Of a stretch of 37,586 nt of DNA, positions 8,741 through 37,586 are shown piece by piece (the first letter of the stretch is position 1; each line of letters begins with the position of its first letter). The stretch is from Oopsacas minuta (Eukaryota; Animalia; Porifera), in contig JAKMXF010000069.1 in assembly GCA_024704765.1 (NCBI GenBank), positions 1 to 37,586 on the forward strand, written 5' to 3'. The notes beneath the pieces are model-generated. The model did no database searches. It saw nothing but the letters and a program-made list of their open reading frames with translations, and was not told where the DNA came from. The translations under genes were made by a program, and so were the position numbers.

Positions 8741-11049
8741 TATATGTAAAAGAGTACAGAACCATGTTCTGTTATGATTGGGGTGAATATCCTCACTTGG
8801 CTAGACTCCAATAGTTTTCATCCCAACTGGGGTAAAAATAAATGCTCAAACTTACCAAAACATTGTTCTAAAGCAGGCTTGTACAACCTTTTATAGAAGT
8901 GGGCCATATTATCATATTCAAACTATGTTGTGAGCCGGGTGTTGATTTTTATTCACAATTTGTAATAACTATATATTTATCAGATTAAATTACTTGTCGA
9001 TAGTTTAGAAATTAATCTTGCAACTTACAAGGATGAAAAATAGAGTTTTAATTAAAGCCCCTAATGTTATAGCAAAAAAACGAAATTATGATAACTAATG
9101 AGATATTTAACACTGCTTGGAGCGAACTATCATTGAAATATCAGGTCTGATTGTTGATATTGCAACTCGAAGCTGATTAGGAGATGTCTGTCAGTAAGGT
9201 TGGTTCTAGCTTTGGTTTTAGTAAACTTCATTTTCGAGAAAAATTGTAAGCAGATGTAGGTACTGCCAAAGACATATACCATCTTAAGTGCATGGTAATA
9301 AAGTATTAAGGGAGCATCTCTAAACTTTTCTCTTAGATGTGACGCACATTGTAGTTCTATTAGTTCAATTTGATATCTTTCTGGAACTAGATCAACATCA
9401 ATATCGAATGTAGACGAGAATATTTTGAAATCTTGTTCGTGGAGATCAAAACTCGCCATCTTATGGGAAAATTCAGTTTTAAGTATTGTTATTTCATCAG
9501 CATATTTGGTCAAATTGATTGATGTGTCTCATTTACAGTAAGTTTATTCAGGCAAGGGAAATGACTAGCATTATTTTCCAGCAGCTGCCTCTCCCAAAGT
9601 CGAAGTTTAAGTTAAAATGCCTTGATATGTTCATAGAGTTGGGTGACAAGTTAATTTTTTCCCTGGAGCTTTGTGTTCAATTAATTAAGGTGTGCTGTTA
9701 TGCCCACGAAAAATGCTAAGTCCATCTGCCAAGACTCATCTTGTATTTCAGGCACATGGTGGTCTTTCATTTCGACGAAAAGTTGGATTTCATGTAAAGA
9801 CTGTCGAATCTAATCAAACAATTTCCCCTACTTAACCAGCGAACCTCGCTGTAATAAGTCACATCGCCATATTCAGCATTTATTTCAATCAGGAATTCTT
9901 TAAACTGTCTGTGATCTAGAGCTTTTGATCGCATGAAGTTTACTGTATTTACAACAACAGACATTACATTATTCATACGGAGACGTTTAGCGCAAAGGTT
10001 TCCCTGGTGAATGATGCAATGAGATATTATTAGATCGGATTCTAAACCTAATATCGATAGCTCTCTCAATGCAAGCGCAACTACGCCTTTTCCCTTTCCC
10101 AACATACAGGGAGCACCGTCCGTAGTTAATCCAATGATTTTGAAGAAAGTTAAATCATATTTCAGCAACGAATTTTTCAGTTCAGCAAACAGTTGTTCTC
10201 CAGTCGTTGTACTTCTCATACTACATACCTCTAATAGATCTTCCGTGATATTAAAATCAGAATCTAAACTTCGGACAAATATTGATAGCTGTGCAGTATC
10301 ACCCACATCAGTAGATTCATGGAGACAAATGGAATAGATACTGATATTTTCTGAACATTTCATCAACAATGCTCCCATATTTTCTGCCAAGTCATCTAGC
10401 CTTCGAGGTATTGTAATACGGGCACAGTGGTTTAGAAGCAAAGAATAGACAAAAAATTGATTACGTATTTGATGGCTTTATTTCATTTTATATTGTTTAA
10501 ATAATTCTCATTTAAAATATCTAAGCGATTGAGAGCCTAGAAGCTGTAAAATTTCTTCATCAAAGATGCGAAATATTCAAAGGAAATTGCGGCTTCATGA
10601 TTTCTAAATTTAGCCCAAATTTCAAATGAACCTGTAGGAGCAATTACATAATCGTATGTTACTAATCTGGTATACTTTATACATTTCAACTATGCTAAAT
10701 CTAAATATCTTGTTTCTATGACTCAATCTTGTATATATTTCGTGAACATGTGATTTCTAAAATCTAGTAAAATCAGTACAGAATTTTTACAAAGAGGGAT
10801 ACTTAAAGTGTCAGGAAAAATAAACAACACAAAACAACAGCGCAAAATGAATCGGGTATTCGCATTACGATTCCTAAAAACATACTCTAAAAGCACAAAA
10901 CCCGAAACAGTGCGCAACCTACAATTTTCAATGACATTCCGCTACAACTTTTGGTGCTAGGACATTGCCATTTTAGCATACTGCAACAATGGAATGAAAT
11001 AATATTGAATTTCGTTCTTGAATTTTATTATAGTGACTTATATATATAA

Positions 11050-13319
11050 TCTACTGAATAATGCAACATATTTTTTCGGAATTTCTTGAAACAATGACAG
11101 AAGAGTTAACTTTCTCAAAGTCCCGCCTCGGATGGCAAGAATCCTGAAAGAAAATAATAATTGTGTCTTGAAAACGACAAAATATTTCAAAGAACACTTT
11201 GAAATAGACTCTAATAATACCAAACTCTTGGAAACGTTGCTGTTAAGAATTCGGGACAGATTCAAGAAGGAGAAGAGCTCTTTAGATTGTTTAGAAGGAG
11301 AATAGTGGCATTCTAACATTTCCATGAAACCTGAGTTAAAGAAATATCGTGTTTCTGATTTTCTAGAATTGTCTTCTGATGATGGTGAAGTTCCCATTCA
11401 TTCAGCGAGTCATATGAAGCATCTTGATGAACTCTCTCTGCAACAACAGCGTACTCGATTGTCAAGTCTGCTAGAATGCATTAAGTCATTCTCAGTTATC
11501 GAGAATACTACAGAAATAAGCATTGCAACACTCTCATTACTTCGATTGGCAAATGAGGAGAATAATCGTCAGGTTACTATGGTAGCCAAAGAGATTATTG
11601 TCAGTGGAGGATTCTGTAACCTCAGTAACAAGCATGTTCCTGTTGATAAAGCCTTATTCCTGCTGGATTTACTTGAAGTGGGCAGACGAAAATACATTCA
11701 ACTACATCAAACACTTCTAGCAGACAATATACATTCCCATCTTACAGCAAGCTAGCTAATCTGAGAGATGTCATGATTCCGCGATCCTGTATAACTTTAT
11801 ATCCTAATCCAGCTAAACCAATAGGTATACACGCACCATATTGTCTTCAAGTTCAGAAAACCCTGGAAAGAATATTATCAATGGTAGATCGCCCCACAAG
11901 TGAAGAATTCGCACTCACATCTAAAATCGCAGATGGCTTAGATGGTTCTGGTTGTCACACTATCTAGAACCAGCAGACAACTAGTACTTTCACCAAAACT
12001 TCATTCTGTTTTGTTTCAGGCCCATTTCCATCCACACTGTAACAAACAGGATTGTTTGGCAGATTACATCCCCTAATTCACCCTTCTCTCAAAGACCTAT
12101 TTTTCTCTGCGCTGCGACAGAATGCGAAGAAAATATTCGTTCCCTCATGGGAACTATGATCAATCCCGATACAGCGATGTGCAAAATAGGATTCCTTTAG
12201 AAAATGGTGTTGTCAATGTCGATATTATCCGCTCAATGTTTGATGGGAAGATGGCAGACATTCTCTCTGGAGCTAGAGGAGCCAGTTGTCAGATGTGCAT
12301 TGCTATACATAAAGATTTGAAGGACCGGAATTAAGTTCTTGAAGGGTTCCCCATCAACAGAAATATCACAGATGCAATCGAGTTATTAAAGCACATTGAT
12401 GACATTGAGTCGTTCTTTGCTCTTTCGATTAATGAACGCTACAATTTAACTCATCAACCAATTTTGAGATTAATATACATCAGCATCTCCACTTCATTCA
12501 TACACAGGCGTATTTAGGTAAGTAATCTAGTACTCCATTAATCATCAGAATTTATCTTCACATAATTAAACCAATTATAGGTGGTTCAATTTGCTGGTAT
12601 ATCATCTCGCATCGAAAAGTTACCTGGTCCCCAACCTCACCAGTTATCAAGGAGTCAATGAAATTCCTTCAAACAATTATTCAGGGGAAGACAGGATTAA
12701 AGGTTGACCAGCCTAATTCTAGCGGTGGAACCACCTCAACAGGGAATGTTGCTAGAAGAACCTTTTCTGATGAAAATGAATACCTTGAATGCATTCTATC
12801 AAATGTAGCAATACAATTTCGCCCAATTTTATCAAAGATACATACTTAGCTTTCAGCCATTTTTCGGGTTTTCAATTCGAGTCACAAGGTTAACACTTTG
12901 GAATTGGAGAAATTGTGCAAGGATACCTACCTTGTCATCTAAGATTCTTTCCCCTGGGTTAGCATGACTCCAACCCTGCACATGCTCTTGGCCCATTCCG
13001 AGGAGTTAATACGTGAGTCGAATTCTAGTTATGGCTTAAAGGCATTTTCAGAAGAAGGCACAGAATCATGCAACAAATTAGTTAGAAAATATCGTAGAAA
13101 TTAGCTCATAAAGTTAGTTTTTATATCGATATTAGGGATATCTTCTTCAGATTAACCTCTCAAAGTGATCCAACCTTAGTAAACTATCGAAGAATTTCGA
13201 CTTGTGAACGATGTGATCAATCTGGACACACAACGAGTTCTAAATCCTGCAATGCAATGAACAATCGGAGAACTAGTACACAGACTTTATTCACGACTTT
13301 AACCTCCAATACAGATTAG
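11050..13319 (+). pseudogene. RAG1-like/Transib transposase pseudogene (NBD-like region, DDE core, ZnC2/ZnH2, CX2CX3GHX6C tail); true start uncertain, may lie near 10850
   Basis: KHLDELSLQQQRTRLSSL; GLDGSG (D at 11941); MFDGKM (D at 12242); CQMC; VDQPNSSGGTTSTGNVARRTF; PWVSMTPTLHMLLAH; FSEEGTESCNKLVRKYR (E at 13063); SDP; CERCDQSGHTTSSKSC. Confidence 0.9.
12518..12580 (+). other. 63-bp spliceosomal intron in the RAG1-like transposase
   Basis: AG|GTAAGT...TATAG|G; removal gives VFRWFNLLVYHL, matching the uninterrupted second copy; unspliced reading stops at once. Confidence 0.85.
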
Positions 13320-13848
13320 CTATCATGTACTTAAATATGAATATAATGTACATTTTGTAAATCAATAAGATAAATTCCATCATAAGTGTGACGTCATAAC
13401 TCTATAAATAGAAGCCCTACAGCAAAATTTTCAGTTCAAGGTGACCGCCAAATACGGATAACCCGTATGTAATTAATAGATTTCATGACGATAAAGTAGA
13501 GTAAAATGTATTTATTGAAGAAAATTTAAAATTCACATATATCAATGACGTCATAACTTGGAAATTTTAGGCCATATACTTGTTTTGACAAGATGTATTG
13601 GTTCCTTATATATAATAATCTATATGTAACAATACTTTTCATATGGTTATCTCACACCAAAATAGCTATTCTTTACTAACTGCCCTATTAAACTACTGTT
13701 ACGGGATAGACTGATTTTAGAAATTAGTTCTTTCTCTCAGGACACAAAATCTCAGTGACAGTCTTAATGCAGTCCATAACAAATTCTCCATCTGTGAAAC
13801 ACTTAAGATTTTTAGCAATAATTTCACTTACGGCGTAGCTAGCTCTTA

Positions 13849-27289: not shown

Positions 27290-29153
27290 TAGGCCGGATC
27301 GAGAAAAGTATAAATTGTCGCTTCAACTTCTACCTAAGGCAAAAGTTGCCTTGACTCTCTTCTAGGAAAATGCGAGACATAAATTTGAAAAATATTTCGA
27401 GTTGACCATAGCGGTTTTATTTTTGCGTGTCACTTTCCCAAACTTGGCTTTGAATTGTGCGAATTCTCTAGTTCCTTTGACTTAGCCCCTTTAGATATGT
27501 TATTTGGTAATAGTAAGTCGCATATTTGCTTCCTTATGCTGTATTAGGCTAATCTCTGTCTTCTAAGATACTCAAGTTATCATGATATTTTTTGCATATT
27601 CTATCATACCCTAATAATATTATCCACCCCCCTTTTGTTCCGAAGATTTGCAAACGCATAATTCTTACAAATAATAGCTATATCCTCACCAAACTTAGTA
27701 TAATTCTGTATCTAGATCCAAATTCATCAATATTACCATAAAGAAATTTTACCAACTTTCCTTATCTCTCTTGCTCTTGACTTAGTTACCATTTATCTAG
27801 CATGGATTTTATGGTCAATTATTGTATCTAAATAAAACTCACTCAAATGACTCATATTATAGAGTGATCATATTCCTATAATCTATGTAATTTTGAATAT
27901 AGTAGGATACACACTTAGTATTGTAGTATTTCATTCTGTTTTGGTTATCCTGGACCCATCCCAGAAAATCTACTCCCAATAAGCTAGATCTATACAACCA
28001 TTATAGTATGCTTAGAAATGAAGATTCTAAATCACCTAGAGATGATATAGCGCAAGAATTGACTGAAGTATTAGTGCGTATCTATAATTTGGCCTCCATA
28101 CCCACAAAATCAGAGCTCCAAATATAACAGTTCATCATTTCTGATATTATTAAGAGAGCTAAATACTACAGAAAAGTATCCAAAACAAGCAATACCCTCA
28201 CGTGTCCAGCCTATAATTCCGAATTCAATGTCTTGTTCATTGTCTCAAGTTACAAATGCCTAATTCAAGAAGCAAAAGTTTTGCTCTCTCAATAATATCA
28301 GAAATGGTGTACTGTTATATTTGGAGCTCTGATTTTGTGGGTATGGAAGCCAAATTATAGATACGCACTGATACTTCAGTTAATTCTTTCGCTATATCAT
28401 CTCTAGTTGATTTAGAATCTTGATTTCTAAGCATACTATAATGATTGTATAGATCTAGCTTATTGGGAGTAGATTTTCTGGGATGGGTCCAGGATAACCA
28501 AAAACAGAATGAAATACTACAATACTAAGTGTGTATCCTACTATATTCAGAATTACATAGATTATAGGAATATGATCACTCTATAATATGAGTCATTTGA
28601 ATGAGTTTTATTTAGATACAATAATTGACCATAAAATCCATGTTAGATAAATGGAAACTAAGTCAAGAGCAAGAGAGATAGGAAAGTTGGTAAAATTTCT
28701 TTATGGTAATCTATTGATGAATTTGGATCTAGATACAGAATTATACTAAGTTTGGTGTGGATATAGCTATTATTTGTAAGAATTATGCATTTGCAAATCT
28801 TCGGAACAAAAGGGGGGTGGATAATATTATTAGGGTGTGATAGAATATGCAAAAAATATCATGATAACTTGAGTATCTTTGGAGACAGAAATTAGCCTAA
28901 TACAGCATAAGAAAGCAAATATGCGACTTACTATTACCAAATAATATATCTAAAGGGGCTAAGTCAAAGGAATTAGAGAATTCGCGCAATTTAAAGCCAA
29001 GTTTGGGAAAGTGACACGCAAAAATAAAACCGCTATGGTCAACTCGAAATATTTTTCAAATTTATGTCTCGCATTTTCCTAGAAGAGAGTAAAGGCAACT
29101 TTTACCTTAGGTAAAATTGAAGAGACGATGTATACTTTTCTCGATCCGGCCTA
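27290..29153. mobile_element. Foldback element: ~870-bp inverted arms (27290-28159, 28283-29153), 123-bp spacer, 8-bp TSD
   Basis: Ends TAGGCCGGATCGAGAAAAGTATA / TATACTTTTCTCGATCCGGCCTA; TSD TTGTTGAA at 27282-27289 and 29154-29161; arms align along their full length with scattered substitutions and small indels. Confidence 0.95.
27920..28295 (+). pseudogene. N-terminal fragment of a hATm-like transposase in the left arm and spacer of the foldback
   Basis: HSVFGYPGPIPENLLP..KLDLYNHYSMLR..DDIAQELTEVLVRIYNLASIPTKSELQI..NVLFIVSSYKC; family assignment from recalled N-terminal pattern only. Confidence 0.5.
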
Positions 29154-35787: not shown

Positions 35788-37403
35788 CACAGTGACTTAA
35801 AATGGGAGTTAGTAAAGAATGGGTATTTCATTTGAAATAGACATATATAATGTATTATTAGCATATAGGTTATCATATGCTAGGAATCATTTGGTGCATT
35901 CAAAATTTTTATAAGGTTTCTATATATCATGTTCTGACGTCATAGCTTTATGCTGAATTTTGTTTTTCTTTAATATCTGATTATATAACAATGTTAGCCC
36001 TATAAATTGTATTATTTGGGTATAGTATATCATATCCATGGAAGCAATTATAACTGTTAGAAATACAAAATAATTCATAATTTTTATAAAATGACGTCAT
36101 ACACAATTTTGCTTCTGTACTTCATACTTCTAAATGCGTTTTTAGAATTTATTCATATCTTTTTTTTGATAATATATATATCAATTATAACAATTTCTTG
36201 ATAAAAACAATAAGCACTTATTGTATTATTTATTCACTAACATTCAGCAAACTACGTTGTTACAATATCCTATCAATAATAAGGCCCTTGACGATGTTAT
36301 CAATAGATGATTCTAATAAATCTGTTGCATTGTCTCTACAGCACTTAGCTCTTCGGGCATGACCGTGTTTTCCGCACTTTTCGCACACCACTGTCCATCG
36401 ATATTTCATTAACACAGGATCGCTTTCAGATGAGAGCCTAACAAATATATCAATGACATTATCCTCGAAGGAAGTTTTCCTTGCTAGATGTTCCCTATAT
36501 TTCCTGATTAATTTGTTGCAGGCTTCGGATCCCTCTTCGCTAAAGCATTTCAATCCATACCCAAAGTTCATCTCTCTCAGTATTTCTTCAGAATGGGCTA
36601 GTAATTTATGTAAAGTCGGTGTAATGTTCACCCAGGGAAAGGATTGAAGAATAAGGAGATAGGTGTCTGTAAAAAGGTTACCCAATTTTTCTGTATTGAT
36701 TTTTCTGTCTGAATTTATGATTCTCAGAATGACAGATAATTGTGTGTGCAATTTACAAAGTTAGTCTCTATGATCAATCTTAACCAAAGACATTGCGCAT
36801 TCAATAAACTTGGTGTCATTTTAAAAAGCTCTTCGAGCCACACCACCAGTGGAAGTAGTACCTCCTTTGGGGTCTGGTTGGTCAATTCTTAGACTTGTTA
36901 CTTCTTGAACTATGGTTCGCACATCCATCATAGAGTCCTTAATTTCTTTTGATGACGCTGACCATGTGAGCTTGTTACAATTCAGGTGGTACACAAGTAA
37001 ATTAAACCATCTAAAAATGCACGTATAGGAATGTAAGGGAGAAGCAGGTAGAATATCTATTGTTGATAATGGTTGGTGAGTCAGGTTAAATCTTTGATTT
37101 GTTGGTAATGAAAAGAAAGCATCAATGTCTTCCAGTTCTCCAAATAATTGAATTGCGTCTGAAATGTTTCTATTGATGGGATAGCCTTGCAAAATTAAAT
37201 CACGATCTTTTAGTTCTTTCTGCGTTGCAGTACATAGTTGGCAACTCGCACCTCCTGCTCCTGAGAGAATACTTGCCATTTTACCATCAAGCATTGATCA
37301 GACAACATCGATAAATATATGTCTATCATCGGCAAAATAGAAACCTTGGTCCTTCATTTGATCAGTTTCGGGATTGATGATATCTTTCATAAATTGGTGA
37401 ATA
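35788..37403 (-). mobile_element. 3' part of a second, divergent Transib/RAG1-like element
   Basis: End CACAGTG-19bp-AAAGAATGG at 35788-35822; shares GTTAGTAAAGAAT at the same offset with the 3' end of the first copy; interrupted at TA 37402-37403. Confidence 0.9.
36260..37401 (-). pseudogene. RAG1-like/Transib transposase C-terminal half, few lesions
   Basis: MLDGKM, CQLC, PLHSYTCIFRWF, IDQPDPKGGTTSTGGVARRAF, PWVNITPTLHKLLAH, FSEEGSEACNKLIRKYR, SDP, CEKCGKHGHARRAKCC. Confidence 0.93.
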
Positions 37404-37586
37404 CAGGGTTGGGCATAAGTTCTGCCACAATATTATAATCCAGCCAAAAATTATTCCATTAGTTATTTGTATCTGTCATTTAGCTCGAACTTTGTTATAA
37501 TATATATTTTTCACTCTTTCCCTGAAATTTTATATTATCTTAGCCTTTTGAAGCGATAATTGGTCATGGAGCAAGAGAGGTCGAAA
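37404..37586. mobile_element. One end of a maT-like element inserted in the second RAG1-like gene
   Basis: ta|CAGGGTTGGGCATAAGTTCTGCCACA resembles the other maT TIRs in the window; the RAG1-like reading stops at this TA. Confidence 0.75.

Follow-up and report, generated by a model that had tools for sequence, protein, structure and literature searches.

Uneven placement of a terminal 9-mer in a decayed Transib copy of the sponge Oopsacas minuta and in its diverged relatives

The stretch of DNA considered here, which we call the window, comprises 37,586 nucleotides of contig JAKMXF010000069.1 (assembly GCA_024704765.1) of the glass sponge Oopsacas minuta, and its positions 10423-13700 are occupied by a decayed, inactive copy of a Transib transposon, 3278 bp long. 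According to our analysis this copy carries one and the same 9-bp sequence, AAAGAATAG, near both of its ends, 10 bp behind the terminal heptamer at the 5' end and 19 bp behind it at the 3' end, and this +10/+19 placement of the 9-mer is constant in no fewer than three diverged families, found in two assemblies. We find it probable that the family possesses functional two-part uneven ends, in which a 12-bp terminal element, CACAGTGGTTTA, is followed by the 9-bp AAAGAATAG at +10 or at +19. The element itself is a single-gene Transib related to the RAG1 core, with a tail resembling that of RAG1L and with a sponge host. The window copy (10423-13700) is further called c1, and a second, diverged copy (35788-37400) is called c2.

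Boundaries and ends of the window copy

The boundaries of c1 and its target-site duplication are seen directly and are exact, because empty sites, with position 10422 joined straight to 13706, are found in other copies of the host repeat in public contigs of the same organism, and because the deletion of 10423-13705 makes the reading frame of this repeat open again. The insertion of c1 is a cut-and-paste event into another multi-copy repeat, which produced the 5-bp duplication ACGGG. An earlier note, made from the sequence alone, had given the positions of the element, this duplication and a geometry of 10 bp at the 5' end and 19 bp at the 3' end, and all of them were confirmed on the sequence.

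Counted from the 12-bp element, AAAGAATAG follows after 5 bp at the 5' end and after 14 bp at the 3' end, which are the same offsets as +10 and +19 counted from the heptamer (Table 1). The heptamer together with the adjoining GTTT is kept in nearly all 5' and 3' ends that we collected, and AACAGTA at the 3' end of c1 is to be taken as a mutated CACAGTG, because sister copies carry CACAGTG at both ends. In the 37.6-kb window, both strands taken together, there are three exact occurrences of AAAGAATAG, two of them at the ends of the element. At the 3' end of c2 the heptamer CACAGTG (35788-35794) is followed by a 19-bp spacer and by AAAGAATGG (35814-35822), as had been noticed before, while the block common to c1 and c2, earlier given as 13 bp, measures 14 nt (AGTTAGTAAAGAAT). 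Upstream c2 is cut at ~37401 by a mariner-type end (37401-37435), which belongs to a set of four related ends that the window contains, and its 5' end is therefore absent from the contig.

Table 1. Positions of the transposon features in the window
Feature	Positions	Strand	Remarks
Left target-site duplication ACGGG	10418-10422		empty site in other host-repeat copies; host frame restored
5' terminal 12-bp element CACAGTGGTTTA	10423-10434	+	heptamer CACAGTG (10423-10429) and GTTTA; also at the 3' end
5' spacer GTTTAGAAGC, 10 bp	10430-10439	+	length 10 in three families, sequence variable
5' 9-mer AAAGAATAG	10440-10448	+	9/9 or 8/9 match at this site in L004, L005, L006, L008, L001, L012
A-run ACAAAAAAT, rival "nonamer"	10449-10457	+	exactly at heptamer +19; A-run at +19/20 in all six 5' lineages
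Decayed Transib transposase gene, ~740 codons	11094-13319	+	several stops and frameshifts
DGLDGSG motif	11932-11952	+	in the transposase gene
MFDGKM motif	12236-12253	+	in the transposase gene
Intron-like insert GTAAGT...AG, 63 nt	12518-12580	+	in L004, L005, L008, L013; absent in L001, L012, c2
SEEGTESCNK motif	13048-13077	+	in the transposase gene
Zinc knuckle CERCDQSGH..C	13203-13250	+	C-terminal part of the transposase gene
3' 9-mer AAAGAATAG	13666-13674	-	read on minus, 13674-13666; shared with sister copies
3' spacer GTTTAATAGGGCAGTTAGT (minus strand), 19 bp	13675-13693	-	ungapped 19 bp in 7 lineages, 18 in L012; sequence well conserved
3' heptamer AACAGTA	13694-13700	-	mutated; CACAGTG in sister copies
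Right target-site duplication ACGGG	13701-13705		sequence and empty site
Diverged second copy (c2), 3' part only	35788-37400	-	66% DNA identity

The element was inserted into a transposase-like gene that exists in many copies and that extends here over 9767-10422 and from 13706 onward on the minus strand; its match to DUF4371 is weak (E 0.005), and public contigs contain copies of it without the interruption. Elsewhere in the window, at 27290-29153, there are nested inverted repeats with arms of 405, 225 and 198 nt and a complementarity of 94-97%.

The layout in other copies and its competing readings

The loci compared with c1, designated here by L-numbers, were retrieved around homologous gene fragments in the O. 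minuta assembly and in ENA metagenome assemblies. Seven 5' ends from three diverged families (c1, L004, L005, L006, L008, L001 and L012) show CACAGTG, a spacer of 10 bp (9 in one copy) and then AAAGAATAG or its one-base variant. Twelve 3' ends show CACAGTG, 19 bp (18 in L012) and then, ungapped, AAAGAATAG or AAAC(A/T)TTAG, the 9-mer being at +19 in c1, L004, L005, L008, L013, c2, L001 and L007 and at +18 in L012. The short 5' spacing, which the earlier note knew from one copy, is now seen with its 9-mer in six further copies, and three families keep +10 at one end and +19 at the other rather than an equal spacing at both, so the uneven layout is directly observed family-wide.

Within the c1 family, whose members share 89-94% identity in their terminal 250 nt, L004 and L005 (duplications TAGAT and CTGTT, respectively) have CACAGTG (CACCGTG in L005), GTTTAGAAGC and AAAG(A/G)ATAG at the 5' end and CACAGTG, 19 bp and AAAG(A/G)ATAG at the 3' end; L006 and L008 possess the 5' end of this family with one-base changes, and L013, which is without its 5' end, possesses its 3' end. 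L001, from a diverged O. minuta family with ~62% identity to c1 over the first 300 nt and 73% over the best-aligned ~107 nt, shows at its 5' end 10 bp and AAAGGATAG, and at its 3' end 19 bp and AAAGAATAG. The third family, L012, comes from a eukaryote in the ENA metagenome assemblies and has the duplications TATAG and TATTG; its 5' end reads CACAGTG, GCTTAATAGC and AAAGAATAG, and its 3' end CACAGTG, 18 bp and AAAGAATAG. With c1 and L012 sharing ~66% identity in their first 300 nt, either end of both still has the 9-mer in its full 9/9 form, and across the three families the 5' spacer drifts in sequence (GTTTAGAAGC, GTTTGAATAC, GCTTAATAGC) while its length of 10 is constant.

Past mobility is likewise directly documented, since five complete pairs of ends are flanked by perfect and different 5-bp duplications (ACGGG, TAGAT, CTGTT, CGGTA and TATTG), and elements with such ends have therefore transposed in the past. 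A GC-rich duplication, as in c1, is not a trait that holds across the copies. Each complete pair collected consists of one 5'-type and one 3'-type end, and two like ends were found in none of them. L007 and L008, without matching duplications, and L001, with a degenerate 5' heptamer, serve as evidence of the layout only.

Several points have to be weighed against functional two-part ends. For a single element, the probability that the two ends agree in 9/9 positions by chance is only moderately low: when the A+T-rich subterminal 38 nt of c1 were shuffled and all offsets were allowed, 38 of 2000 shuffles reached it, as did 195 of 5000 for L012, and the families share ancestry and are therefore not independent trials. 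A chance occurrence of an A-rich 9-mer near both ends of an A+T-rich element, which these counts might favour for one element, is nevertheless highly improbable to our mind, being contradicted by the additional copies, where this motif recurs, with its two offsets unchanged, in three families from two assemblies; besides, CACAGTG followed by AAAGAAT within 5-30 bp occurs 2 times in the window versus 0.02 expected.

At the 5' end there is, moreover, an A-run at +19/20 in all six 5' lineages, which is more like the classical nonamer, and the ends can therefore be read also as symmetric 19/19. The distal A-rich block would then be located at heptamer +19 at both ends (ACAAAAAAT at the 5' end, exactly 19 bp past the heptamer, and AAAGAATAG at the 3' end), similarly to Transibs with equal spacers of 20-23 bp, and AAAGAATAG at +10 would be a passenger or an extra site. 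This fits with L009 and L012, where the A-run reads AAAAAAATC, the published Transib consensus nonamer, and with MAFFT, in whose alignment the initial ~45 nt of all 5' ends need only single-base gaps and no gap of 9 bp. We regard it as unlikely, however, because at +19 the two ends share only 5/9 A-rich positions versus 9/9 in the shifted alignment, because families with ~62-67% identity in their first 300 nt all retain the motif at +10 with a match of 9/9 or 8/9, and because the ends of relatives in the literature, where the offsets are the same, are interpreted as uneven.

Another group of observations would be better understood if there were no discrete second element, the terminal 12-17 bp alone being read by the core and a CTT*-type knuckle, the subterminal stretches being promoter, untranslated-region or host-factor sites, and the 9-mer being a relic of an older and longer inverted repeat. 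The conservation of the 3' spacer and of ~100 nt farther inside equals that of the 9-mer, unlike in the recombination signal sequence (RSS), and in most lineages the palindrome TGACGTCA is found ~155 nt from the 3' end. In invertebrate RAGL the first 15-17 bp and CTT* are reported to be sufficient, and these are mainly what protostome RAGL and ProtoRAG require. The sister lineage L007/L009/L011 from ENA has, at the collinear position of its 5' end, only a sequence similar to ACGTATTAG, although two of its three elements have perfect duplications, and its 5'/3' similarity beyond 11 nt is not significant; with the 5' motif diverged in this lineage, the 9-mer is therefore not kept everywhere. Against functional two-part ends there is also the result that the N-terminal piece of the transposase showed no sequence similarity to the RAG1 nonamer-binding domain in the PDB search. 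We consider the absence of a second element doubtful all the same, as the 5' spacer drifts between diverged families in which the 9-mer at either end is unchanged, and as an experimentally active relative has two elements in this arrangement, again with a difference of 9 bp. Functional two-part ends stay the probable reading. The interpretation in the earlier note, with heptamer-plus-nonamer-like ends and a possible 10/19 pairing rule, is supported in part: the uneven layout of the 9-mer agrees with it, whereas the A-run at +19, a 3' spacer as conserved as the "nonamer" and the divergence of the 9-mer in one sister lineage make it less certain that the transposase reads the 9-mer.

MAFFT with a single 5' end of the sister lineage suggested that the sponge 5' spacer had lost 8 bp, an idea that was dropped because three such ends gave a collinear alignment in all MAFFT modes. 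In L007 (3893-3911 and 7498-7510) the sequence GATAGCG of the 3' flank is found again upstream of the 5' heptamer, at a distance of 12 nt and not adjoining it, 7 unexplained bases (CGCGGCC) being placed between the apparent duplication and the end. The palindrome TGACGTCA is present in the window at 13389-13396 and 13546-13553, and also in c2, L001, L004, L007, L008, L010, L011 and L012; its position ~155 nt from the 3' end is common to most lineages including those from ENA, and it is repeated at ~312 nt in the c1 family and c2. Of its 19 occurrences in 171 kb, 16 fall in these 3' ends. It may be a host-factor site or a second site of the transposase.

The transposase and a proposed mechanism

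The identity of the element as a RAG1-related transposon, as the first reading had it, follows directly from its DDE motifs (Table 1), the Pfam match to RAG1, the match to HzTransib and the fold of an intact relative. Pfam on separate gene pieces gave a weak RAG1 match (E 1e-4) over the third catalytic region only, and the C-terminal piece of c2, compared with known structures, matched HzTransib of Helicoverpa zea (6pqn) with E 8.7e-11, amphioxus BbRAG1L with 5e-4 and RAG1 with 5e-3. The features taken here as marks of the Transib superfamily are present, namely a DDE core, a 5-bp duplication, CAC heptamer ends and a single gene without a RAG2-like partner; between the ends of the element there is neither a frame nor room for a RAG2-like kelch gene, and the 3278 bp contain no other long frame.

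Among 1.84 billion representatives 1,484 relatives were found, and an intact relative, P0017, was modelled with AlphaFold (mean confidence score pLDDT 80.8). By fold the model matches HzTransib (Z 31.8), narrowly above the RAG1 core (~Z 31, mouse), and then BbRAG1L (Z 28.3), while 512 of its residues are aligned to BbRAG1L versus 472 to HzTransib. It differs from HzTransib in ~215 extra N-terminal residues, with helices at the place of the RAG1 nonamer-binding domain, and in a zinc-knuckle tail that aligns with BbRAG1L, the alignment reaching residue 1125 and spanning the knuckle. In four RAG1 structures its residues 147-163 onward align to RAG1 397-408 onward, into the nonamer-binding domain. 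A "GRR" motif, tried as the GRP of that domain, was rejected, since the structural alignment puts it at the equivalent of RAG1 residue 460 onward. A word-indexed search with P0017 returned a single further protein, long relatives, looked up by cluster, were entries from marine metagenomes and krill, with none from O. minuta, and around the P0017 gene no convincing ends were found in L002 or L003.

The zinc knuckle is spaced Cx2Cx3GHx6C in c1 and Cx2Cx3GHx5C in c2, versus Cx2Cx3GHx4C by which CTT* is defined (Martin et al. 2020); 64 of 97 relatives possess the exact form in their tail. Judged by its sequence, the knuckle of c1 appears to be a near-exact one of the CTT* type, as in RAG1L. The gene of c1 contains in addition the intron-like insert listed in Table 1, and the removal of these 63 nt restores the conserved peptide ...YTGVFRWFNLLVYHL, matching c2; the insert, specific to the c1 family, therefore resembles a spliceosomal intron that this family alone has acquired.

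We propose that the RAG1-like DDE core and the C-terminal CTT*-type knuckle would hold the heptamer and the next few bases, as the DDE core and the zinc-knuckle tail do in ProtoRAG, and would carry out nick-and-hairpin cleavage. The N-terminal helical region, which precedes the dimerisation domain and is placed as the nonamer-binding domain of RAG1, would reach the 9-mer at two distances, and with two such distances the synaptic complex would naturally pair one short and one long end. Both the part of the protein that reads the 9-mer and the preference for unlike ends we infer here, and a strict pairing rule should not be assumed, because ProtoRAG prefers unlike ends only moderately.

Relation to known systems and meaning

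The placement of the second block behind the heptamer at +10 and +19 has already been published, and the sponge family is of a known kind. The exact precedent is AanRAGL of the alga Aureococcus anophagefferens, an active element with 13-bp and 10-bp terminal elements and spacers of 4 and 13 bp, the 5' end being the short one (Tao et al. 2022, PMC9435367). Its second element is at positions 18 and 27, which corresponds to 12+5 and 12+14 here, that is, to heptamer +10/+19, and it shares with the sponge element the short 5' end and the 5-bp duplications; by our own reading of the supplementary DNA, its RAG1L open reading frame appears to encode a Cx2Cx3GHx4C knuckle near the C-terminus. The differences are a RAG2-like gene, present in AanRAGL and absent in the sponge element, the heptamer CACACCC versus CACAGTG, an unrelated sequence of the second element, and a sponge transposase that is by sequence nearer to HzTransib than to RAG1L.

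According to the same study (Tao et al. 2022, PMC9435367), asymmetric ends and a CTT1 (CTT*) tail are common to all Subgroup I Transibs, and the end feature is present here as 12-bp and 9-bp elements with spacers of 5 and 14 bp in three families. One of the published examples, MleTransib_2823 of a ctenophore, reads CACAGTGGGGAT, then 15 or 4 bp, then ATGACATTAAG (Tao et al. 2022 supplement, PMC9435367). The sponge element resembles this subgroup and this example as a single-gene Transib with a CACAGTGG start, a 12-bp terminal element and a second element at unequal distance; it differs from MleTransib_2823 in that there the end labelled 5' is the long one, and in the sequence of the second element. 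For a coral RAGL element (Tao et al. 2022, PMC9435367) we counted spacers of 6 and 17 from the alignment extracted from the supplement PDF, a source in which the lengths of gaps may not be dependable.

RSS12-like 5' ends combined with RSS23-like 3' ends were described for the insect families Transib5, Transib2_AG and TransibN1-3_AG (Kapitonov & Jurka 2005, PMC1131882) and reviewed by Yakovenko et al. (2021). They agree with the sponge family in the short 5' and long 3' end, in a heptamer with an A-rich distal block and in 5-bp duplications, and differ in spacers of 12/23 versus 10/19, in the consensus heptamer CACAATG and in being mostly of Subgroup II type, like HzTransib. The RSS of variable (diversity) joining, V(D)J, recombination has the identical heptamer CACAGTG and a second conserved block at two distances about one helical turn apart, but its nonamer ACAAAAACC matches AAAGAATAG at 4/9, its spacers are 12/23 versus 10/19 and poorly conserved, unlike the conserved sponge 3' spacer, and no RAG2 partner is present here. 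In the library searched we found no literature linking Transib and Oopsacas, and a broader search on sponges showed no paper with Transib among the 15 listed; the family is apparently the first sponge member of the uneven-ended Transibs.

As the window copy is dead and the concept is known, the value of the finding is incremental. The data point to a geometry that is old and conserved and not a result of repeated accidents. As to the origin of the 12/23 rule of V(D)J recombination, it is conceivable, though we think it rather improbable, that heptamer +10/+19 is an ancient enforced pairing rule, common to the pelagophyte RAGL and to RAG2-less sponge Transibs and read by an N-terminal region similar to the nonamer-binding domain. 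If this were true, a rule of the 12/23 type would be older than the capture of RAG2, and would be neither a vertebrate nor a RAG2-dependent invention. The sponge family adds to this picture an early-branching animal host with a RAG2-less transposase that possesses a zinc-knuckle tail resembling that of RAG1L, and its families, with one layout and drifting spacers, constitute a natural mutational series.

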